A DNA stretch of 64,000 bases. It comes from Haliotis cracherodii (lineage: Eukaryota). Below, one piece after another: positions 19,328-64,000 of the stretch. The position numbers were made by a program, and so were the translations under genes. The notes under the pieces were generated by a model, which had not been told where the DNA came from, did no database searches, and worked only from the letters and a program-made list of their open reading frames with translations. Where the stretch lies: contig NW_027266297.1 in NCBI RefSeq assembly GCF_022045235.1, forward strand, positions 71,114,001-71,178,000, in the 5' to 3' direction. How positions within the stretch are numbered: the first letter of the stretch is position 1; every line of letters starts with the position of its first letter.

Positions 19328-20142
19328 CAACTAGTTTTAATAAAACCTTATAATGGGCTTTTTTACATAATGTCAGAAATACATTTACGTATGTTTATTT
19401 GTACGAAAGAATATCAGAATATCGACATAAATCAACATTTCAAACCACAAACTGACAATTAGTTGAGTCTTATTTAATACACAATCAATTAATCAAACTT
19501 TACCGCATACAATATTATGGTTATATACTCAGAGTTGACACATGTGTCGGGTTGTCACATATTGCACTCCTTGCACACAATGGCGTTTCAGTTCGTCACA
19601 GAAGATATGTACAAACCAGTTGTCCTTTGATCGGATCAACTGAGCCGTGTCTGTCATCGTCATCACCAGTGTCATCTTCATTGTCATCACATCGTTTTCA
19701 TTGCCATACAGGGCCGTCCAGGTTTTGAGATTCCTGTCTGTTATTGGGTGAGGTTGACACACATGCTTAGAAGCACTTCCTGTGCACAATGGATGGGCCG
19801 GACTCATCGTACTCCTGCTTGCTGATCCACATTGGCTGGAAGGTGGACAGAGAGGCAAGGATGGAGCCACCGATCCAGACGGAGTATTTCCTCTCTGGGG
19901 GAGCGATGATCTTGATCTTCATTGTGCTTGGGGCAAGGGATGTGATCTCCTTCTGCATTCTGTCGGCGATACCAGGGAACATGGTAGTACCTCCTGAGAG
20001 AACAATGTTGGGGAACAAGTTATTACGAATGTCAATGTCACACTTCATGATGCAGTTGGATGTGTTTTCGTGGATACCAGCAGATTCCATTCCCAAAAAG
20101 GATGGCTTGAAGAGGGCCTCTGGACAACGGAACCTCTCGTTA

Positions 20143-20382
<240 letters not shown>

Positions 20383-24513: not shown

Positions 24514-25320
24514 ATACTCGGAGATTTCTTATGATTATAAACAGGGCTTTTATTTGCCCTCATTAGTTGTCGGACAGCCAGGGTGATCTCGGAATAGCGA
24601 ACCATCATTCACATCGTCCCAACGATTTTATAAATGAAACTTAAATAAAACGTATCATTTAAAGAATGTAATGTATATATTCAATTATAAAAGCTGTTTG
24701 AAGCAGTCAAACAAATGACAACATCCATGTGGTTCCTTGAGGTGAATGTGCTCAGCTCTAGAACACAAACACCGGGATCTCCCAAGCCTCGTTCTAGCAT
24801 GACACGGGGGATTTCCCAAGCCTCGTTTTGGCATGACTCAGGGATTTCGCTCCTTTCACTTTAAAATAGCTGACTCATGTTTGTTTTCCTCCGTCAAGTC
24901 GGTATTTGTGGACACTATCAGCACTGACATTCTCACTAGACCTCACCTGTAGTGTCTTCAGGAATACACACTGAATGAAGGTTAGATTTATGCATTTTTC
25001 AGAGCACATAACTTGTAACGGGATGAAAAACGTGTCAGTAGAGGGACGAGCAACGCCCCCTTTTCCGACCTATTGTACTGCCCGGATGAGGGTATGCGGG
25101 TGTGAACACCGCGAGGGTGTCGCCTCAACGCAGTACTACGGGATTAAGTATACTGCAGCGTTTGGGTGGGATAGGTATCGAGTTGAAAAAGTAGAGCGGG
25201 CCAGACCGGGTCAGAGTTCGATGAGCATGAGTAATATACACTTATAGCTTGCCACACATGCAGCACCGGCGCCGATCTCGATATCGAACCAAGCATAGAG
25301 GTTGAGGCATATGTTTATCT

Positions 25321-25438
25321 CCATATAAGGCAGTGCGTGTCCATTTATAGCGATCTGGAAGCACGTGTTTATATTGTTTCCAGATATGGTCACATAAACA
25401 CACATACTTTATTTCCATTTTCAGGCAGAGTATATATA
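25321..25438 (+). promoter_or_regulatory. Promoter of the divergent actin-like gene: CArG boxes plus TATA
   Basis: Perfect CArG CCATATAAGG at 25321-25330, near-CArG CCAGATATGG at 25380-25389, TATATATA at 25431-25438, ATG at 25509. Confidence 0.75.
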
Positions 25439-25508
25439 GTCAACATCGTCCGGAGTTTCTGTACAGGTGAATTGTTCGTGACAGTCCACAGCTAAAAAAT
25501 ATATCAAC

Positions 25509-28500
25509 ATGTCGAAGGCGTCGGGAGCTCATGTGATCATTGACATCGGCACCTACCAGACCCGAGCCGGCCTAGCTAACGACTCAGCACCCCGTGTCGT
25601 TCAGCCGACCCTTGTGGGACGAGGGGTGGGAGAGGTAATACTGACACTTTTCTTTGTCTATCAGATAGCTTAGTAGGCAGTATGTTTAACGTGTGGACCT
25701 CCAGATACCGCGGATCTATGATAAATCTGACGTATATCTCCGGGGAATAAGGGAAACGGTGGAAGGATACAGCTCGCACGTGATGAAGCAACGCGCATTC
25801 TATCGCGTGTAGCTCCTAAGGTATCGACAGACCATCTCTCCACCTCGTCGAGAGGCCCCGATCCAGTGAATGGCTGGTCTTGTGCCTCCCGCTACCCCGC
25901 ACTGTCGAGAGCGCTCGAGATCTCCTCACTTCCTGGTTTGGTCGGATAGAAGAAGGGAGGAGGGGTCGGTGATGCTAAATATAACCCGGCAGCGTGAGAA
26001 GGCTGTATCCAACGTGCACGCGCGCGTCCAATGTGCAGCAACCCATCCCTTCTCCCCCCCGGCTCCGTGTCGGCTAGCGTTACAGGCGTCGCCCACATGA
26101 CCCCCCCTTCCCTCCCCCAAGTTAGGCCAGCGCAGCTGAGAGGTAGACTAGGCTCTGTGTGCACGTGTCTATACTGTTTAGTTACCAAAGCGGATGCGCA
26201 ATCCTATATTAGGACTAGTCGTTGGTCGGTTTAAATGATTACAACCGTTGATGGATAACGATCTTTGAAATCGAAATCTGACCCAGTTGAAAGAATGCGC
26301 GTCTGACATGGCAGCATGTCGTAGGCTTATCATTCAAACAGGAAAAAACATGTTATTTGAGTAAATACCGTATGTTCTTTATATTAAAATGAAAATATAG
26401 ACTAAATACATTCAGGGTAAATTGTTTTAGTGAGGAAATATGTTGTCTATGACCTTTTCCACACCAATGAATTGTTACATCTGGAAGTTATGCTCTAGCT
26501 GGATAATTGTTATCTTTGGTAACATGCTTAGGAGATTAACTCCTGGAGACAAGGAATTATCTTTGACACACGCATGCAGTCCTTGTTGCTACATTGTGTA
26601 TTCGTGTGTAGAGGGTGACGTCTGTACGTTTCGGGGGGAGGGTGGGGCTGCTACTCATACCCATCAAACACCCCCACCCGGTCACTATGTCACGTGTGTA
26701 GAGATAGTTTCACCGGCCATTCCGTGCATGTACAATGGATATATTCCGGTAATACACACGTGCATCATGCACACGACAGGCGCTCTGTGAAACCTACTGG
26801 TGTCATTCCTCGCGTTTATTGGGGTAGGAGCTCAGTGAGGCTTGGGGTGAACTTCAGTGAGACGGGGGTGGAGCGCAATGAGATTGGGAGGGAGTAGGGA
26901 GAGAAGCGTCGGTCTTTGTTCCCCTCGGGGAATACCACGAACAGCTGGGAATCAGTTCTGCCGTGACAGACATTCCGATGAGGACTTAGCGTTTTGCCAC
27001 CCCCACCACACCCCCTCCCCCCCCTCCCCCTCTCCCTCCCCCTCTCCCTGCCGCGCTGCGCCATATAGGACAAAGGGCGACAGATCGACATCCCCTACGC
27101 TCATGGTTTAGTTTAATTGTTCATGTAATATTTTGTCCATTATGAGTCATAGTCCACTTCCCGTGTCCGACAGGGTGGTCAGTCGACTTCGGCTACAACT
27201 ACATCACGTAACGCCAGCTTTTGTAAGAGTGGCAGAAAAGATAATTTTTTAATAATAAATGTCAACAGTCTTTGTTGAGCTTAAGCACTACTAACGGTAT
27301 GAAATAATGACTTTTTCCTTTTATTGGGAAGTTATTTATGAATTAAGGCGACACTCTTTGGTGTCTCCCCTGTACATATGTTTTTCACGTGACTGCTATA
27401 TATCACATGTGTTACATGTCATGAAGTCCAACATTGACAAAACAATTTATATAACACTTCCTTGTTCACTCTGCAGAGAGGGCATAACCAGGGATTTTAC
27501 GCCGCTTCATAAACTACTTCACTGACGTGAAGGCATTGCAGCTGTCTATTTCAGTCCTGGAATCTATGTTGTGCATCGAATCCAGGTCAGCTGTGTGATG
27601 TTGACAGCCTTGTCTCAGGGCTACACTACACAGCATGTAGAGTATGCGAATGGGACATCGCCTGCAACATGGCGGACATTGGTTATTTGACTGACACATA
27701 ATTATGAAATACATAATTTGGACAAAGTTGGGGGTTTTTTTTAGTTAAACTCCATCATTCGATCCTTGGTTGATAGGCTAGAAGTACACGCACAATGTAA
27801 TTGTCTTAAATGACAACCAACAAGATAAACAACGCCAGTATCATATGGGTTGGATAAAGAAAACAAACGATTCCTCTTGGGGACAAAGGTCGTTTAATAA
27901 TGACAATTTTTTAATCGAAAACATAAAACTTCAGATCAAACAGACTGAGAAAAAATCACCAAATTTCTGAACAACGTGTAGTTTGCATGTTACGTTTGGC
28001 GCCTGTGATGTTCCCCTTGCAGCAATAAAAAAACAAATACCGCTTACAGCATTATCAGCAATATGACATTTGGGGTTGTCTCCCCATAACTGTTAAAATA
28101 TATGGACACTAAAACAAATGTCATGGCATTGCCGTTTAAATTAAAATAAACTAGGCTTTATTTCTTACAAATTAAACTCCGGAACTACCAGGACTGGACA
28201 GAGTAGATCTGTGTTTGTTTTTATGTTGATATACATATATATACACGCATGTATGCACGTGTGTTTTTATCTCAACCGAATATTCTGTGTTACAAATGGT
28301 TACCACGGACTGTTTTGGTATTAAAAGTATTGCTATTGTCATTACAGAACAAGAACGCGACCTATGTGGGTTCAGCAGCCAGGGCCAGCCGTGAGGGCAT
28401 AGTGCTGAGTCAACCCGTCCGCGAGGGAGAGATCCGAGACTGGGACGATGTGGAGGCCATCTTGAGGGATGTCTTGGTGGACAAGCTGGGCGTCGAGACA

Positions 28501-29316
28501 CATGACCGCAACGTGCTGCTCATTGCCTCGCCGTCCCTGGACCCCCAGGCCAAAGAGAAGATGGCGCAGATCATGTTTGAGAAGTTCCAGGTCGCTGGTC
28601 TGTTTGTTGCCAACAGTGGTGTTCTCAGTCTGTATGCCGCGGGGAGGCTGGCGGGTGTGGTGTTGGAGGCAGGAGACGGCGTTATCCATGCCGTCCCTGT
28701 GCATGAGGGCTTCGCGCTGCCCAAGGCTGTCACACGGTGGGCGTTTGGTGGCAGTGGACAGAGCGAGTTCCTCTGCAAACAGCTCTCTGAAAAGGGCTAC
28801 AATTTGTCCGATAATCCAGAAGCAGTACGGGAGATCAAAGAGAGCTTGTGCTATGTGGCTAAAAGCTATGATCTGGAGATGGCCAAAGCATCAGATACAT
28901 CCTTCCAGAAGACATTCAAGCTCCAAGACGGGAAGGTCGTCACCCTTGGTAGCGAGATGGTCAAGACGTCAGAGATCCTCTTTACTCCTTCAGTTGGAGG
29001 TCTGTCAACTTCTGGGGTCGTCGCCCTCTTGAATGAGGCCATTGATAAGTGCACTGCTGAACAACAGAAGGTCATGTATGGCAACATCGTCCTTGCGGGA
29101 GGCCCTACTCTCGCCACTGGGTTCGTGGAACGGATGAAGAAGGAGGTGAAGACTAGGGCTGCCTATGCCAACGTTGTTGCTTCGGAACACCGAGAACACG
29201 CAGCCTTTATTGGAGGCAGCACCCTTGCCGCTCTGGACGACTTCCAGTCCATGTGGGTCACGGCGGCCGAGTACAAACAGAAGGGAGCCGGAGTCATCCA
29301 CGACAAATGCAAGTAA
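25509..29316 (+). CDS. Divergent actin-like (actin-related) protein, join(25509..25634,28348..29316), 364 aa
   Basis: Exon 1 (absent from the ORF track) encodes MSKASGAHVIIDIGTYQTRAGLANDSAPRVVQPTLVGRGVGE, aligning with actin [29 protein letters not shown]. Donor GAG|GTAATA at 25634/25635; acceptor TTACAG| at 28347/28348, phase 0. Exon 2 is open for 322 aa with actin motifs WDD, EKM.QIMFE, VLSLYA.GR, GDGV.H.VP, IGGS.LA and H.KC. AATAAA at 29818-29823. Confidence 0.9.
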
Positions 29317-29332
29317 ACAGAACTGTTCGGGA

Positions 29333-29470
29333 GGTGATTGACCAGTACATCTTGAGATGATTGACCAGTACATCTTAGAGTGATTGGTCAGTACATCTTG
29401 AGATGATTGACCAGTCCATCTTGAGATGATTGACCGGTACATCTTGAGATGATTGACCAGTACGTCGTGA
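29333..29470. repeat. 23-bp tandem repeat (GATGATTGACCAGTACATCTTGA) in the 3'UTR of the divergent actin-like gene
   Basis: About 6 units here and about 11 units in the inverted paralog at 43055-43308. Confidence 0.9.
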
Positions 29471-30170
29471 TTCGTGTGCTTTACACACAGCAGAATCAGT
29501 GCAACAGACTGAAATAGGTTTCCTCTGTTATGTCTAATGGGACATCCCAGGCTGACTGAACACAAACTTGATCCAAAGTGACAATGAAAGGTTTCTTTCT
29601 AAAATTGAAGTGCAGTGCAAGTTGTGTTATGTTTCAAGAGATTTTGTCAAGGGCTATTTTCATACAAATATTTTGTACATATTAATATCAAAAGTGAAAG
29701 GGATATGTTGAAGAATGTGAATATATTTAAGAAGTTCATGAAAGTGAACCACAATGAACGCTGTTTGTCTCGTTGTTTTGTCTCGCTGTGTTAATGTTTA
29801 TGTGTATAGTTTGGGTTAATAAATGGCTCAGTGTTCAAGATATGCACCTCATGTTGGTTATTGTTTGCAGTCACGTCATGGGACATATAAATTATTTATA
29901 CCCAATGAATTGACCCAATGTGTGTCTGTCTATACAGACATATTCTATGATATGTACCCGCGTCAGCATCTTAACGTATATTAAAATAAAAACACCCGTT
30001 CCTTCTGGACTATATATTAACAACTACTTTTGAGGGATTATATCTCTCGAAAGATTGTTTGAGGGACTATGTTTGATTAACTATGTACGGTTTGAGGTAA
30101 TATATCTCACTAAGTATTGTTTGAGGTACTGTACCTTACTATGTATTGTTTGAATGGATGAGGGGAGAAG

Positions 30171-35953: not shown

Positions 35954-37674
<1,721 letters not shown>

Positions 37675-38910: not shown

Positions 38911-39042
38911 NNNNNNNNNNNNNNNNNNNNNNNNNNNNNNNNNNNNNNNNNNNNNNNNNNNNNNNNNNNNNNNNNNNNNNNNNNNNNNNNNNNNNNNNNN
39001 NNNNNNNNNNNNNNNNNNNNNNNNNNNNNNNNNNNNNNNNNN
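38911..39042. other. Assembly gap (132 N)
   Basis: Run of N. Confidence 1.
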
Positions 39043-42025: not shown

Positions 42026-43323
42026 CTTTGGGCTTGCTACGGGAATACTGCTGATGGAATATTACTGCGTGAATACTACTACTAGAAAACAACTGCTGGA
42101 ATACACTTGGAAAAACTACTGCGGGAATACTGCTGCTGGAATACTGCTACGGGAATACTGCTGCTGGAAAACTACTGGAATAGTGCTGCTTGTACGATTT
42201 TGCTGGAATACTGCTGTTGGAAAGACTTTGCTTGAATACTGCTGCTGGAATACTTCTCGAATACTGCTACGGGAATACTGCTGCTGGAATATTTCTACTG
42301 GAATATTGCTGCTGGAATACTTCTATGGGAATACTGCTACGGGAGTACTGCTGCTGGAATACTGCTACGGGAATACTGCTGCTGGAATACTGCTACGGGA
42401 ATACAGCTAGTTAATCAAATATAATCCCTCAAACAATATTAAGCAAGATATAATACCTCAAAAGTAGTTGTTAATACACAGTCCAGAAAAAACAGGGCTT
42501 TTTGTGTTAATATACATAAAGATGCACACGCGGGTACATATAATGGAATATGTCTGCGTATGCATATGTTGATGACACATACATTGGCTCATCTCACTTT
42601 AAATTATACATAAAAGGTGAATAAATAATTTAAACTTCCCGTGACGACAAACACTGACAAACATATCCTGAACATTAAGCCATTTATTAACCAAAAATAT
42701 ACACATAAACATTAATACACGATCGTCATATACGAGACATAATCTTACAACACTGTGGCTCACCGTTCATATTTAAGGTGCGAATTTCACATCCATTAAC
42801 ATATCCCTACACTTTTAATATTAATATGTACCTAACTATATGTATAAAAAGTCTCTCGCATATAACATAAATCAGGCAGTCCTTCAATTCCATTTTACAA
42901 AGAATCCTTTCAAGGGCACATCGGGACACATAGTCATGAGTAAATCTAAAGTTTGTGTTGAATCAATTATCAGTGCGGGGTGTCCCATTAGACATAACAG
43001 GGGCAAACTATTATAGTCTGTTGTACTGCTTCTGTTGTATCTAAAGCATACGAATCAAGATGTACTGGTCAATCACCTCAAGATGTACTGGTCAATTATC
43101 TCACGATGTACTGGTCAATCATCTGAAGATGTACTGGTCATTCACCTCAAGATGTACTGGTCAATCATCTCAAGATGTACCGGTCAATCATCTCAAGATG
43201 TACTGACCAATCACTCTAAGATGTACTGGTCAATCATCTCAAGATGTACTGGTCAATCACCTCAAGATGTACTGGTCAATCATCTCAAGATGTACTGGAC
43301 AATCACCTCCCGAACAGTTCTGT

Positions 43324-44400
43324 TTACTTGCATTTGTCGTGGATGACTCCGGCTCCCTTCTGTTTGTACTCGGCCGCCGTAACCCACATGGACTGGAAGT
43401 CGTCCAGAGCGGCCAGGGTGCTGCCTCCAATAAAGGCTGCGTGTTCTCGGTGTTCCGAAGCAACAACGTTAGCATAGGCAGCCCTAGTCTTCACCTCCTT
43501 CTTCACACGTTCCACGAACCCAGTGGCGAGAGTAGGGCCTCCCGCAAGGACGATGTTGCCATGCATGACCTTCTGTTGTTCAGCAGTGCACTTCTCAATG
43601 GCCTTATTCAAGAGGGCGACGACCCCAGAAGTTGACAGACCTCCAACTGAAGGAGTAAAGAGGATCTCTGACGTCTTGACCATCTCGCTACCAAGGGTGA
43701 CGACCTTCCCGTCTTGGAGCTTGAATGTCTTTTGGAAGGATGTATCTGATGCTTTGGCAATCCCCAGATCATTGCTTTTAGCCACATAGCACAAGCTCTC
43801 TTTGATCTCCCGTACTGCTTCTGTGTTATCGGACAAATTGTAGCCCTTCTCAGATAGCTGTTTGCAGAGGAACTCGCCATCTCCCATTCGATGCACAACA
43901 TAGATTCCAGGGCTGAAATAGACAGCTGCAATGCCTTCACGTCAGTGAATTAGTTAATGAAGCGGCGTAAAATCCATGGTTATGGCCTCCCTGCATGAGT
44001 ACGAGAATCTGCACTTTACTAAGAAAATGTTTTCCCAAATATATCATTTGTTACATTTGACAACTTTCTAAATGACATTGTGTATCCATAGTTTTCGGCC
44101 GGTATCTAGAGGTCTACACGTTAAATATATTACCTACTACGTTACCTGATATACAAAGAAAAGTGTCAGTATTACGTTTATGGACTGTCACGAACAATTC
44201 ACTTTGCAGACACTCCGGACGATGTTGACGACATTTCCTCTGCCCGAAAATGGAAATAAAGCTTTGTGTTTTGGGGACCATATCTAGAATCAATGTAAAC
44301 ACGTGCTTCCAGATCAGCAGGGCCTTATATGGAGATAACATGCCACAACCTCAATGCTTGGTTCAATGTCGAGATCAGCGCTGGTGCTGCAAATGTGGAA
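43324..44400 (-). pseudogene. Truncated pseudogene of the divergent actin-like gene
   Basis: Only the C-terminal ~184 codons remain (43324-43877). Coding exon 1 is deleted (junction GACAGTCCATAAAC|GTAATACTGACAC at ~44175), as are the acceptor and 5' part of exon 2 (junction at ~43878). The TATA box is mutated; CArG CCTTATATGG at 44323-44332 is retained. Confidence 0.9.
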
Positions 44401-44547
44401 AGTTAAAAGTGTGTCATGCCAAAACGAGGCTTGGGAAACCCCAATGTCATGCTGGAACGTGGTTGGTGAGATTTCGGTCATGCCAGAACGAGGCTTGGGG
44501 GATTCCTGTGTTTGTGTTCACTGGAGCTGAGCACATTCACCTCAAGG

Positions 44548-51358: not shown

Positions 51359-53460
<2,102 letters not shown>

Positions 53461-56816: not shown

Positions 56817-58135
56817 GTACGACTGTCGCAGTATGAGCCTAATTATGAGAGTGACGACGACGACGTTAGAGTGTGCGTACGACTGTCTCAGTATGTGCTG
56901 AAGTACAAGAGTGACGACGACGACGTAAGAGTATGCCTACGACTGTCTCAGTATGTGCTGAAGTACAAGAGTGACGACGACGACGACGTTAGAGTGTGCG
57001 TACGACTGTCTCAGTATGTGCTGAAGTACAAGAGTGACGACGACGACGTTAGAGTGTGCGTACGACTGTCTCAGTATGTGCTGAAGTACAAGAGTGACGA
57101 CGACGACGTAAGAGTATGCCTACGACTGTCAGTATGTGCTGAAGTACAAGAGTGACGACGACGACGTTAGAGTATGCGTACGACTGTCTCAGTATGTGCT
57201 GAAGTACAAGAGTGACGACGACGACATAAGAGTATGCCTACGACTGTCTCAGTATGTGCTGAAGTACAAGAGTGACGACGACGACGTTAGAGTATGCGTA
57301 CGACTGTCTCAGTATGTGCTGAAGTACAAGAGTGACGACGACGACGTTAGAGTGTGCGTACGACTGTCTCAGTATGTGCTGAAGTACAAGAGTGACGACG
57401 ACGACGTAAGAGTATGCCTACGACTGTCTCAGTATGTGCTGAAGTACAAGAGTGACGACGACGACGTTAGAGTATGCGTACGACTGTCTCAGTATGTGCT
57501 GAAGTACAAGAGTGACGACGACGACATAAGAGTATGCCTACGACTGTCTCAGTATGTGCTGAAGTACAAGAGTGACGACGACGACGTTAGAGTATGCGTA
57601 CGACTGTCTCAGTATGTGCTGAAGTACAAGAGTGACGACGACGACGTTAGAGTATGCCTACGACTGTCTCAGTATGTGCTGAAGTACAAGAGTGACGACG
57701 ACGACGTTAGAGTATGCGTACGACTGTCTCAGTATGTGCTGAAGTACAAGAGTGACGACGACGACGTTAGAGTATACGTACGACTGTCTCAGTATGTGCT
57801 GAAGTACAAGAGTGACGACGACGACGTAAGAGTATGCGTACGACTGTCTCAGTATGTGCTGAAGTGTGAGAGTTACGACGTCGACGTTAAAGTATACGTA
57901 CGACTGGCTCAGTATGTGCTGAAATGTGAGAATTACGACGTCGACGTTAGAGTAAACGTACGACCGTCTCAGTATGTGCTGAAGTTTGAAAGTTAGGACG
58001 ACGACGTTAAAGTATGCGTACGACTGTCTCAGTATGTGCTGAAGTGTGAGTTACGACGTCGACGTTAAAGTATACGTAGGACTGTCTCAGTATGTGCTGA
58101 AATATGAGAGTTTCGACGACTTTGAAATATACGTA
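56817..58135. repeat. 60-bp minisatellite (GTACGACTGTCTCAGTATGTGCTGAAGTACAAGAGTGACGACGACGACGTTAGAGTATGC), about 22 units
   Basis: Exact 60-nt period, visible as vertically aligned rows; degenerate at both ends. Confidence 0.97.
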
Positions 58136-58435
58136 CAACTTACTGTATCACGAACAATCAAACCTTCAGGCATCAAAGTATATGTGTTGTTTGACATATC
58201 ATTTAGTCTGCACATTCTTTACGGAGGACAAGTAACTTCCTGGTTGTTGCCTGATCGCAATGTATTCATGTATAACATGCCTTACTTCCCTGATCGCGCC
58301 ACACTTTGTTGTGACCATATATAGAAGTGATGGCAGACCAGAAATTAAGTGTGAACCCTCCACTCTCGCACCCATACCCCCACCCACTCCTCGTGTCGTG
58401 ATTTGCTGTGACTGAGGCGATCCGGCTATTGACTA

Positions 58436-58692
58436 TTTGGTTGGTTGTTTGTTGTGTAACGCCGCTTTCAGCAATATTCTAGGTATATGACGGCGGTCTG
58501 TAAATAATCGAGTCTGGACCAGACAATCCAGTGATTGACATCATGAGCATCGATCCACGAAATTGGGATGCGATGACCTGCACCAACCAAGTCAGCGATC
58601 CTGACCACCCGATCCCGTTAGTCGCCTCTCACGAATTGCCTTTTACGGGAAACATGGGTTGATGAAGACCTATCCTGACCCGGATCTTGGGT
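58436..58692 (-). mobile_element. SINE family B, near full length
   Basis: Family B head, body and tail. Confidence 0.88.
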
Positions 58693-58744
58693 ATTGACTG
58701 ACACCAGGATGTAGGCGTCAAATGTACCTCCTACGTAAAATTCA

Positions 58745-61700
58745 GCAGTATCCCCAATGTCATGGTCCACTGTGTCCCCAATGTCATGGGCTACTGTGTC
58801 CCCTATACCGTGGTCCACTGTGTCCCCTATACCATGGTCCACTGTATCCCCAGTGTCATGGTCCACTGTGTCCCCTATACTATGGTCCATTGTGTCCCCT
58901 ATACCCTAGTCCACTGTGTCCCCTATACCATGCATGGTCCACTGTGTCCCCTATACCATGGTCCACTGTGTCCCCTATACCATGGTCCACTGTGTCCCCT
59001 ATACCATGGTCCACTGTGTCCCTTATACCATGGTCCACTGTGTCCCTTATACTATGGTCCAGTGTATCCCCAGTGTCATAGTCCACTGGGTCCCCTATAC
59101 CATGGTCTACTGTGTCCCTTATACCATGGTCCATTGTGTCCCCTATACCATGCTCCACTGGGTCCCCTATACCATGGTCTACTGTGTCCCTTATACCATG
59201 GTCCACTGTGTCCCCTATACCCTGGTCCACTGTGTCCCTTATACCATGGTCCACTGTGTCCCTTATACCATGGTCCACTGTGTCCCTTATACCATGGTCC
59301 ACTGTGTCCACTATACCATGGTCCACTGTGTCCACTATACCATGGTCCACTGTGTCCCCAGTGTCATGGTCCACTGTGTCCACTATACCATGGTCCACTG
59401 TGTCCCTCATACCATGGTCCAATGTGTCCCCTATACCTTGGTCCACTGTGTCCCTCATACCATGGTCCACTGTGTCCCCTATACCATGGTCCACTGTGTC
59501 CCTCATACCATGGTCCACTGTGTCCCCTATACCATGGTCCACTGTGTCCCTTATACCATGGTCCACTGTGTCCCTCATACCATGGTCCACTGTGTCCCCT
59601 ATACCATGGTCCACTGTGTCCCTTATACCATGGTCCACTGTGTCCCCTATACCTTGGTCCACTGTGTCCCCTATACCTTGGTCCACTGTGTCCCCTATAC
59701 CATGGTCCACTGTGTCCCCTATACCATGGTCCACTGTGTCCCCTATACCCTGGTCCACTGTGTCCCCTATACCATGGTCCACTGTGTCCCCTATACCATG
59801 CATGGTCCACTGTCACCCCTATACCGTGGTCCACTGTGTCCCCTATACCTTGGTCCACTGTGTCCCCTATACCTTGGTCCACTGTGTCCCCTATATCATG
59901 GTCCACTGTGTCCCCTATACCCTGGTCCACTGTGTCCCCTATACCATGGTCCACTGTGTCCCCTATACCATGGTCCACTGTGTCCCCTATACCATTCATG
60001 GTCCACTGTGTCCCCTATACCATGGTCCACTGTGTCCCCTATACCATAGTCCACTGTGTCCCTTATACCATGGTCCACTGTGTCCCCTATACCATGGTCC
60101 ACTGTGTCCCCTATACCATGGTCCACTGTGTCCCTTATACCATGGTCCACTGTGTCCCTTATACCATGGTCCAATGTGTCTCCTATACTGTGTCAATCAC
60201 TGGACCGTCTGATTCAGACTCGATTGTTTACAGACCGCCCTCATATAGCTGGAATAGTGCGGTGTTAAACAAAAAACAAACAAACAAATCCTATACAATG
60301 GTCAACTGTGTCCCCTATACAATGGTCAACTGTGTCCCCTATACAATGGTCAACTGTGTCCCCTAAACAATGGTCAACAGTGTCCCCTATACCATGGTCA
60401 ACTGTGTCCCCTATACAATGGTCAACTGTGTCCCTTATACCGTGGTCCACTGTGTCCCCTATACCATGGTCCACTGTGTCCCTCATACCATGGTCCACTG
60501 TGTACCCTATACCATGGTCCACTGTGTCCCCTATACCATGGTCCACTGTGTCCCTTATAACATGGTCCACTGTGTCCCCTATACCATGGTCCACTGTGTC
60601 CCCTATACCGTAGTCCACTGTGTCCCTTATACCATGGTCCACTGTGTCCCCTATGCTATGGTCCACTGTGCCCCTATACCATGCTCCACTGTGTCCCCTA
60701 TGCCATGGTCCACTGTGCCCCTATACCATGCTCCACTGTGTCCCCTATACCATGCTCCACTGTGTCCCCTATACCATGGTCCACTGTGTCCCTTATATCA
60801 TGGTCCACTGTGTCCCTTATACCATGGTCCACTGTGTCCCCTATACCGTAGTCCAATGTGCCCCTTATAACATGGTCCACTGTGTCCCTTATACCATGCT
60901 CCACTGTGTCCCCTATGCCATGGTCCACTGTGCCCCCTATACCATGGTCCACCGTGTCCCCTATACCCTGGTCCACTGTGTCCCCTATACCATGGTCCAC
61001 TGTGTCCCCTATACCCTGGTCCACTGTGTCCCCTATACCATGGTCCACTGTGTCCCCTTTACCATGGTCCACTGTGTCCCTAATACCATGGTCCACTGTG
61101 TCCCCTATACCATGCATGGTCCACTGTGTCTTTTATACCATGGTCCACTGTGTCCCCTATACCATGGTCCACTGTGTCCCTTATACCATGCATGGTCCAC
61201 TGTGTCCCCTATACCATGGTCCACTGTGTCCCCTAAACCATGGTCCACTGTGTCCCCTATACCATGCATGGTCCACTGTGTCCCTTATACCATGGTCCAC
61301 TGTGTCCCTTATACCATGGTCCACTGTGTCCCCTATACCTTAGTCCACTGTGTCCCCTATACCTTGGTCCACTGTGTCCCCTATATCATGGTCCACTGTG
61401 TCCCCTATACCCTGGTCCACTGTGTCCCCTATACCATGGTCCACTGTGTCCCCTGTACCATGGTCCACTGTGTCCCCTATACCATTCATGGTCCACTGTG
61501 TCCCCTATACCATGGTCCACTGTGTCCCCTATACCATAGTCCACTGTGTCCCTTATACCATGGTCCACTGTGTCCCCTATACCATGGTCCACTGTGTCCC
61601 CTATACCATGGTCCACTGTGTCCCTTATACCATGGTCCACTGTGTCCCTTATACCATGGTCCACTGTGTCCCTTATACCATGGTCCAATGTGTCTCCTAT

Positions 61701-62388
61701 ACTGTGTCAATCACTGGACCGTCTGATTCAGACTCGATTGTTTACAGACCGCCCTCATATAGCTGGAATAGTGCGGTGTTAAACAAAAAACAAACAAACA
61801 AATCCTATACAATGGTCAACTGTGTCCCCTATACAATGGTCAACTGTGTCCCCTATACAATGGTCAACTGTGTCCCCTAAACAATGGTCAACAGTGTCCC
61901 CTATACCATGGTCAACTGTGTCCCCTATACAATGGTCAACTGTGTCCCTTATACCGTGGTCCACTGTGTCCCCTATACCATGCTCCACTGTGTCCCCTAT
62001 ACCATGGTCAACTGTGTCCCCTATACAATGGTCAACTGTGTCCCCTATACAATGGTCAACTGTGTCCCCTTTACCATGGTCAACTGTGTCCCCTATACAA
62101 TGGTCAACTGTGTCCCCTATGCAATGGTCAACTGTGTCCCCTATACAATGGTCAACTGTGTCCCCTATACAATGGTCTACTGTGTCCCGTATACAATGGT
62201 CAACTGTGTCCCCTTTACCATGGTCAACTGTGTCCCCTATACAATGGTCAACTGTGTCCCCTATGCAATGGTCAACTGTGTCCCCTATACAATGGTCCAC
62301 TGTGTCCCCTATACAATGGTCAACTGTGTCCCCTATACAATGGTCCACTGTGTCCCCTATACAATGGTCAACTGTGTCCCCTATACGC
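58745..62388. repeat. 24-bp satellite (CCATGGTCCACTGTGTCCCCTATA), about 140 units, with two embedded identical SINE-B 3' fragments
   Basis: Tandem array; SINE fragments at about 60191-60288 and 61705-61802. Confidence 0.97.
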
Positions 62389-64000
62389 CCTGAACTCACC
62401 GACTGTACACGTGTGAATGTACTGACACAGATTCAGCCATCATTTCGGGCAGATCATTTTGAAACATTGACACCGGCATCTTATTCTCTTCTCTGCAAGT
62501 ATTCCCGGAAGACCATATTTGGACATGTTCATGCTTACAGTTTACCGGCATATCTGCGAGACTGGATTCCTCCCCAGTCAGCACTGGGTCCAGATCGATT
62601 CACCTGATCGATACACCTGATGTCTGGTAGATGTGCCATACCTACTGGACAGCAGGCTTGCTTAAAGACCCCTTGTCACAGCGTTTCTTACGATACAATT
62701 AGGGCCAGACTAGAGTGCGTTGTCATGGCTACTGAAATGTCCGGTTACTATTCCACACAAAAGCTCAAAGGTGCATACCAATATATGCGTGTGCTTGTCT
62801 TATGCATGACCGTATATCAGTATAGTGGTGTTGTGTTTAGTCTCTGCCTCGCACCTTGGTCACATAAACATTGGGGTGGGTTGTAAGTAAGTGAGTAAGA
62901 AAGCCAAAACTAAACCAGAGCTCAACCAGACCCAGCAAAGCCTCACGGAGACTATTGTATTACCTGTCGTGCTTAACGCTGAAAGGGAAGAAAGCAATAT
63001 AATTCTGCAATTGTTAGATACGTAATAAATAAAGATTCGGTCGCAGGCAGGGCCACCAGTGACCTTAGAGATGGCGATGTATGGCCAATTCATTTGAATA
63101 CTATCCACTTAAACTTCCAAAGAAGACAACCTCTCTTGAGGCCCCGTGCCCCGAGGTAAAGGGTATTTATGTTCCCTATTTTTGTCCGAATTTCTTTTCC
63201 TGTTTTTGTGACTCCGGTGTATAGCCTCGGCTGTTGAAAAAAGAGGTCATTCCAAGGTCATCATGCAGGTGTGTGTTGCCACCCATAGCATTTATTGTCT
63301 GACTTAGTTCACAATTGGTGTTCGACACTGCCACGTGTACTCCGAGTGCCTCTCAGTGTATAACGTGACCTTGCCCTTGTCAACAGGTCGTTCGGTCGTT
63401 CATTGTTCTAATGTTGCTTTTTACGGAATCTTAGACAGGATGGGTCCGCTCAGTGATGGAAGAAATGTCGAATGGCGTATGTCGTTTGTGAAACTCATAA
63501 GCACGAATATGGCGCTAACGTATGAGAGCAATCAGAGTCAGAGCAAATTTCAGATTGGAACCCATGACTACCATCTTCCCGAGGCAAGGGAGTTAACTGA
63601 CTTTAAAAGTCCGGTGTCCACCCTTGCCGAGCTAGGCTGGAATTCCTGGGCTCGATCGTAGCGCCACCTGTGGCTATTACGAGTTATGTCCCTTCTATGC
63701 CTCTCCTATGGACCAATCAGATTCCACCTCTCGTATCACTTGCGTTTGCTTCAAACAAAACGGCGGCGCCCAGTCTAGACGATCTGATCCATAACCAAGA
63801 TCTCTATATTGTGACAAAACGAGACCTACATCGCGAAGTGCATCAAATCACGTGAGCACCTTGATTAAAAACATGAAAAGATTTAGAAAATATATGTTGA
63901 CAACTAGTTAGCGGTGCACATGTTTTGTAAATCCTCCAATCGACCGAAATCTGCATGACAGTTTACGAGCGGGATTTCGATTTCGGAGCGCGATTTTGAT

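Follow-up and report, generated by a model that had tools for sequence, protein, structure and literature searches.

A 64,000-nucleotide stretch of the genome of the abalone Haliotis cracherodii (C34:71,114,001-71,178,000 of a 1.18-Gb assembly; hereinafter referred to as the window, whose own numbering is used unless a contig is named) contained an intact and highly divergent actin-like gene among conventional actin genes. This gene (25509-29316; hereinafter the divergent gene) is very probably a functional, transcribed and Haliotis-restricted actin paralogue that was duplicated within a tandem actin cluster, diverged and came under constraint, and its product would not be a filament-forming ATPase. 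The gene had been proposed in a sequence-only reading of the window, whose observation was confirmed and whose interpretation was supported; the coordinates and the reading frame proved exact, an agreement far beyond chance.

Gene structure and transcription

The first coding exon (25509-25634, forward strand) starts with ATG, comprises 42 codons and is followed directly by GT, and the second (28348-29316, forward strand) is preceded directly by AG and comprises 322 codons and a stop. Spliced together, the two coding exons give 364 codons. Contigs of four public sequencing runs were aligned to 25300-29500, including X5 (organism A), a run under the window's species label, and X17 (organism B) and X19 (organism C) from two other closely related organisms. 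Single contigs of X5, X17 and X19 spanned the 25634/28348 junction and skipped exactly 2713 bases (25635-28347), with GT..AG ends in each case. Depth within the intron was zero in X5 and X19, and 1-4 in X17 as against 1333 on the exon. The contig totals of these runs were transcriptome-sized. The phase-0 splice between the 42-codon exon and 28348-29316 that had been claimed for a 364-amino-acid protein was found in the contigs of all three runs and in the RefSeq protein XP_046330648.2, and the gene model, its splicing and its transcription were shown in three related organisms. A processed retrocopy was considered as the source of the junction contigs and rejected: a search of the genome returned just one full match, the intron-containing copy, and one truncated match, and no intronless copy.

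The X5 contig carried 68 additional letters 5' of 25423, the final 30 of which matched 24949-24978. On this basis a non-coding 5' exon was placed upstream (Table 1), with a GT donor at 24981 directly 3' of it. As in the neighbouring actin genes, a CArG box (CCATATAAGG, 25321-25330) was present approximately 190 nucleotides upstream of the ATG and a TATA-like element (25431-25439) approximately 75 nucleotides upstream. These elements lie within or just after the intron in the 5' untranslated region (UTR) of the X5 transcript, and at least one promoter is therefore located further upstream; the divergent gene may have two promoters. For H. rufescens, two transcripts encoding a single protein are recorded in RefSeq. 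At the 3' end, AATAAA was identified at 29818-29823, and the X5 transcript ended near 29837, 14 nucleotides downstream. The 3'UTR contained a minisatellite with 6.1 copies of a 23-nucleotide unit (29331-29470). One extra 23-nucleotide unit was present after 29330 in X5, and its copy number varies between individuals.

Distribution and origin within the actin cluster

Homology searches were run exon by exon, and natural full-length orthologues stood in where the whole protein was needed. Both exons matched the Pfam Actin family (PF00022), exon 1 at E=5e-7 (profile positions 6-37) and exon 2 at E=5.2e-76 (profile positions 45-410). The closest relatives were two RefSeq proteins of H. rufescens, XP_046330648.2 and XP_046330649.2, both named "actin-3, muscle-specific-like" (364 amino acids, 99-100% identical, same junction); XP_046330648.2 was 100% identical to the window's gene over exon 1 (residues 1-42) and shared 318/322 residues over exon 2. 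Intact orthologues were also found in H. rubra (XP_046546957.1, "actin-like", 361 amino acids, 78% identity) and H. asinina (XP_067677691.1, "uncharacterized protein", 359 amino acids, 76% identity). A protein from a Logan contig (P0001) was likewise intact and 95% identical to the product of the divergent gene. In a word-indexed search, the only relatives were H. rubra, H. asinina, the Logan contig and the window's own truncated copy, followed by generic actins at no more than 43% identity; the H. rufescens proteins came from a cluster look-up. When 1.84 billion representatives of clusters at 50% identity (approximately 15 billion proteins) were scanned exhaustively with HMMER, one related cluster above 44% identity was obtained, composed of Haliotis only, and all other representatives were at or below 44%. 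Matches in the ESM Atlas were generic "actin-like" clusters only. By these similarity searches, the gene is restricted to the genus Haliotis, as the sequence-only reading had claimed in calling it lineage-specific; it is older than the split of distant Haliotis lineages and was not seen outside the genus in these data.

In run X20, labelled as RNA-Seq of a "plant metagenome", a contig was 96-97% identical to the divergent gene over 28593-29420. Its amino-acid changes matched those of P0001, so a transcript or DNA of an abalone relative was present in that sample.

The RefSeq names of the Haliotis orthologues are automatic best-hit labels. No publication on the gene, its accessions or its RefSeq name was found in the searchable literature; the public databases model the gene only under automatic names, and literature searches returned no study of it. 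The earlier suggestion that it was possibly uncharacterised held for its function and failed for the gene as such, for which RefSeq models exist in three Haliotis species.

The divergent gene sits among approximately 17 conventional actin copies at C34:71.01-71.17 Mb. The conventional copies within this genome, including those flanking it, were 96-100% identical to one another, in agreement with the near-identity claimed for the neighbours. Identity of the divergent protein to neighbouring actin was 17/42 residues in exon 1 and 131/324 in exon 2, close to the approximately 40% estimated by hand. In the neighbouring actin, the first coding exon comprises 41 codons followed by a GT donor, and the acceptor lies before G42; this phase-0 intron falls in the same alignment column as that of the divergent gene. 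Because the phase-0 intron at codon 41/42 is common to the neighbours and the gene is located inside the cluster, the divergent gene can be regarded as having arisen by duplication there. Among approximately 100 database proteins, identity to the divergent protein rose with identity to conventional actin and never exceeded 43%, which is the pattern to be expected for a derivative of conventional actin.

In phylogenetic trees, which were quick searches with Arp2 as the labelled actin-related protein (Arp) reference, the four Haliotis sequences formed a clade with 100% support in the Shimodaira-Hasegawa-like approximate likelihood ratio test (SH-aLRT). The clade was placed inside the actin group (96-97% SH-aLRT), away from the Arp2-labelled group. 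A single clade of the Haliotis actin-cluster genes and the divergent clade was not rejected by the approximately unbiased test (p=0.275). The stem of the Haliotis clade measured approximately 1.1 substitutions/site and identity between distant Haliotis species was 76-78%, consistent with the rapid evolution that had been proposed. The strong divergence preceded the split of the living abalone species, and purifying selection has acted since.

Residue changes, selection and alternative readings

The AlphaFold model of the H. rubra orthologue had a predicted local distance difference test score (pLDDT) of 95.9 and a predicted template modelling score (pTM) of 0.92. Its best solved match was actin (4pl7_A; Z 47.4, root-mean-square deviation 1.3 A, 340 residues aligned, 40% identity), and an actin fold with its four subdomains is predicted with high confidence. 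The length differences from actin that had been read off the sequence were all found in the alignment: +1 at the N-terminus, -6 at G42-M47, -2 at E205-R206, -1 near 230 and -3 near 324-326.

In the nucleotide pocket, G15Y, K18R, H73E, Q137S, D154E, S303P, M305L, F306A and K336E were fixed in all orthologues, and G13, G156, D157, G158, H161, R210, K213, E214, G301 and G302 were kept. In actin, Q137 positions the hydrolytic water, G15 belongs to the phosphate-1 loop and H73 is methylated. Pocket identity to actin is 52%, against 81% invariance among the members of the clade; the pocket was thus remodelled and then frozen. Changes were also found on the pointed-end face. The D-loop, which inserts into the next subunit of an actin filament, has lost six residues (actin G42-M47), a deletion that is invariant in the clade, and in the pointed-end longitudinal contact set identity to actin is 19% and 8/32 positions are deleted. 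The hydrophobic plug is altered (F266V, I267G/A), the 322-326 loop is three residues shorter than in actin, and F375 is replaced by lysine (F375K) throughout the clade. The neighbouring C374 is kept. At the other end of the protein, the acidic N-terminus of actin is replaced by a neutral or basic one. On the barbed face, 52% of the contact set and 69% (9/13) of the target-binding cleft match actin.

These changes suggest a non-polymerising, hydrolysis-impaired actin-like protein. With Q137S, G15Y, H73E, D154E and K336E, the pocket would hydrolyse ATP poorly or not at all, and the protein would probably still fold around a ligand in the cleft. The shorter D-loop, the altered plug and 322-326 loop, F375K and the loss of the acidic N-terminus likewise suggest that it no longer forms filaments; its pointed face could not be extended, and the largely retained barbed-face cleft could allow docking on actin or on cleft-binding partners. 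The most likely mode would be that of a monomeric or filament-end-binding actin-like subunit. More tentatively, the product might be a catalytically impaired actin-like protein with an inextensible pointed face, one that caps filament ends or is built as a fixed subunit into an actin structure peculiar to abalone, such as one in sperm. Abalone sperm proteins evolve fast. A complex prediction between the H. rubra orthologue and a 74%-actin-like protein (P0005) scored 0.02, which is no evidence either way.

The divergent protein shares with the conventional metazoan actins of the flanking genes the fold, the length class without insertions, the phase-0 intron after codon 41 and the location in the cluster; it also retains G13, G156-G158, H161, K213, E214, G301-G302, C374 and most of the barbed-face cleft. 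It might be asked whether it is a specialised but conventional-acting isoform, such as a muscle isoform, that polymerises and hydrolyses ATP. The name "actin-3, muscle-specific-like" implies as much, and the full-length fold without insertions, the retention of numerous residues of the pocket and of most of the barbed-face cleft, the position in the cluster and the very high k-mer depth of the transcript contig in one run (1333), as for a structural protein, would be in accordance with it. The name is, however, an automatic best-hit label, and Q137, G15, H73, the full D-loop and Phe375 of conventional actin are absent and the plug is altered, with H161 kept. The changes Q137S, G15Y, H73E, D154E, K336E and F375K, the D-loop deletion and those in the plug and the N-terminus are fixed in the clade. 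Conventional actin is more than 95% conserved, and animal actins in general exceed 85-90% identity, whereas the abalone protein is at 40% to the flanking actins (against 96-100% among the conventional copies) and has changed much faster (76-78% across the genus). An isoform of this conventional kind is unlikely.

Selection was measured from the differences between the aligned run contigs and the window's gene. Exon 2, with 227 synonymous and 739 non-synonymous sites, showed 19 synonymous and 14 non-synonymous variant sites. The ratio of non-synonymous to synonymous rates (dN/dS, omega) was approximately 0.23 overall and 0.20, 0.25, 0.11 and 0.22 per run, and so few non-synonymous changes were significantly fewer than under neutrality (binomial test, p=2.7e-5). 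The coding sequence was free of indels and of interrupting stops in all runs, and the sole change in the stop codon leaves it a stop. The 364-codon frame was intact in every sampled lineage, including the distant H. asinina and H. rubra, and 256/375 actin-numbered positions (68%) were invariant among four orthologues. An omega of about 0.2 among relatives, well below neutrality, and an open reading frame intact in all lineages seen agree with the purifying selection that had been proposed (0.11-0.25 in four comparisons). This substitution pattern indicates that purifying selection is clearly at work, though less strongly than would be expected on a conventional actin.

A transcribed pseudogene, or a decaying duplicate whose open frame has survived by chance, is very improbable on these data. 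Such decay would fit the extreme divergence from the parent genes, the clearly dead truncated sister copy in the same window and an omega that is well above the expectation (not a measured value) for conventional actin. Against it stand the frame kept open as far as H. asinina and H. rubra, the significant excess of synonymous change and the invariance of 68% of positions among orthologues, rising to 81% in the remodelled pocket; the splice sites, further, are conserved and used. The truncated copy differed from the intact gene by a dS of 0.065 and a dN of 0.026 (omega 0.40), in keeping with one lineage under constraint and the other free of it.

Canonical Arps are an ancient group, conserved throughout the eukaryotes, and most of them have insertions; several do not assemble into filaments like those of actin and serve as subunits or bind to filament ends. 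They have the actin fold in common with the abalone protein. The best 60 matches among sequences of solved structures were all actins, and the H. rubra model was 18-27% identical to chains of the Arp3, Arp4, Arp5, Arp6, Arp8 and Arp10/11 types. Hits labelled Arp were 31-36% identical to the divergent protein, and the closest named hits were actins. The divergent protein is also shorter (364 amino acids, vs 401-626 residues in the Arp chains compared), with small internal deletions relative to actin and no Arp-type insertions. Two proteins, P0179 and P0211, were considered as Arp1 references and discarded, as a sequence search of the PDB identified both as actins. Canonical Arp1-Arp10 have orthologues across eukaryotes; for the abalone protein none was found outside Haliotis, and actin is closer to it than any of the Arp chains in the comparison. 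Against Arp1 in particular the evidence is indirect only, namely that no close orthologue was found outside Haliotis. It is hardly credible that the gene is the orthologue in abalone of one of the conserved canonical Arps (Arp1/centractin or another) and adjoins the actin genes by chance: it belongs to the actin/Arp superfamily (PF00022), and Arp1 likewise lacks large insertions, but canonical Arps have close orthologues throughout animals, where none above 44% was found here outside Haliotis, and actin as the best match by sequence and structure, the intron position common to the actin neighbours and the placement inside the actin clade all point to actin. The earlier exclusion of the canonical Arps, drawn from the lack of insertions, was upheld by these comparisons.

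Several points weigh against the reading of the divergent gene as a constrained paralogue that neither polymerises nor hydrolyses ATP. The loss of both activities is read from residue changes alone, and the lists of contact residues and the roles of individual residues come from general knowledge of F-actin structures. The asymmetry between the pointed and barbed faces concerns small residue sets and is only suggestive, and nucleotide binding may persist, given that several binding residues are retained. The label "RNA" of the runs is a guess, and their RNA nature rests on the exact skipping of the intron and its empty coverage. Six further differences were unlisted in the count of variant sites; omega would be approximately 0.3 if all were non-synonymous, still below neutrality. 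Finally, because of the long stem, the quick trees do not settle the sister group of the Haliotis clade within actins.

Other features of the window and lineage-restricted actin-like proteins

The features of the divergent gene and its surroundings are listed in Table 1. In the truncated duplicate, a promoter-proximal piece, two pieces of intron, the final 186 codons (still open) and the 3'UTR remain, and coding exon 1 and codons 1-136 of exon 2 have been deleted. Its 3'UTR minisatellite is expanded to 11 copies (43055-43309).

Table 1. Positions of the divergent actin-like gene, its truncated duplicate and conventional actin neighbours in the window.
Feature	Position	Strand	Remark
Non-coding 5' exon	24911..24980	+	Minimum extent; true start may be further upstream
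5'UTR intron, GT..AG, with CArG box inside	24981..25424	+	Loose contig end and two ambiguous letters (junction inferred)
Exon with 5'UTR (25425-25508) and first 42 codons (ATG 25509)	25425..25634	+	
Phase-0 intron, 2713 nucleotides, GT..AG, at the actin codon 41/42 intron position	25635..28347	+	
Last coding exon, 322 codons and stop	28348..29316	+	
3'UTR	29317..29837	+	Contig end near 29837; X5 contig extends 337 nucleotides past 29500
Truncated duplicate (pseudogene) of the divergent gene	42408..44547	-	94.6% amino-acid and 96.6% nucleotide identity
Conventional actin neighbour (reference)	13270..15119	-	Two coding exons, intron after codon 41
Conventional actin neighbour	35954..37632	-	Context
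Conventional actin neighbour	51359..53436	-	Context

At 19773-20337 on the reverse strand lies a fragment of a conventional actin, with approximately 90% identity over residues 203-334; interrupted by an in-frame TGA and shortened by an internal deletion, it is a dead actin copy between live ones. Elsewhere in the genome, diverged actin paralogues were identified at L026 and L027 (G000:C34:65.46-65.55 Mb) and L024 (C12:60625419-60626387), with 67%, 61% and 78% identity to conventional actin. In addition, L029 (C5:34571775-34572716) is a single-exon actin-like open reading frame, 38% identical to actin and 29% to the divergent gene, and its best solved matches were actins. Long minisatellite arrays were present at 1537-3077 and 57136-62600, with open frames in several phases on both strands that resemble repeats more than genes. 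At 38911-39042, 132 N mark an assembly gap or a masked stretch.

Non-canonical, lineage-restricted Arps include Drosophila Arp53D, which carries a 40-residue N-terminal tail, the Arps of the obscura group and the mammalian testis actin-like proteins (PMC8291977); male-germline expression is the hallmark of the group. The abalone gene resembles them in being young compared with the canonical Arps, confined to one lineage, fast relative to actin yet retained, and duplicated from an actin-family gene. It differs in that its protein is without a long N-terminal extension such as that of Arp53D, that it originated independently in a mollusc, and that its selection is purifying, with an omega of about 0.2. 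The likeness to testis-specific Arps is put forward as an analogy of kind only. The divergent gene is a mollusc example of lineage-specific "non-canonical" actin-like proteins, a class known chiefly from work on Drosophila and mammals.

Few known proteins are as constrained as actin, and a paralogue that has moved down to 40% identity and was then held in place shows re-use of the actin fold. The birthplace of the gene is still visible, with the parent genes adjoining it and sharing its intron, and the window itself supplies an internal neutral control in the form of the dead sister copy. Testable predictions follow from the compact set of changes that became fixed in the ATP pocket and at the pointed-end face. 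The RefSeq name "actin-3, muscle-specific-like" is misleading, which matters for abalone expression studies that employ actins as references or markers. If the product does act as a cap or as a fixed subunit of a sperm structure, the "young germline Arp" pattern of flies and mammals would extend to Lophotrochozoa, and the abalone protein would represent a naturally occurring actin whose nucleotide pocket is remodelled and yet conserved.

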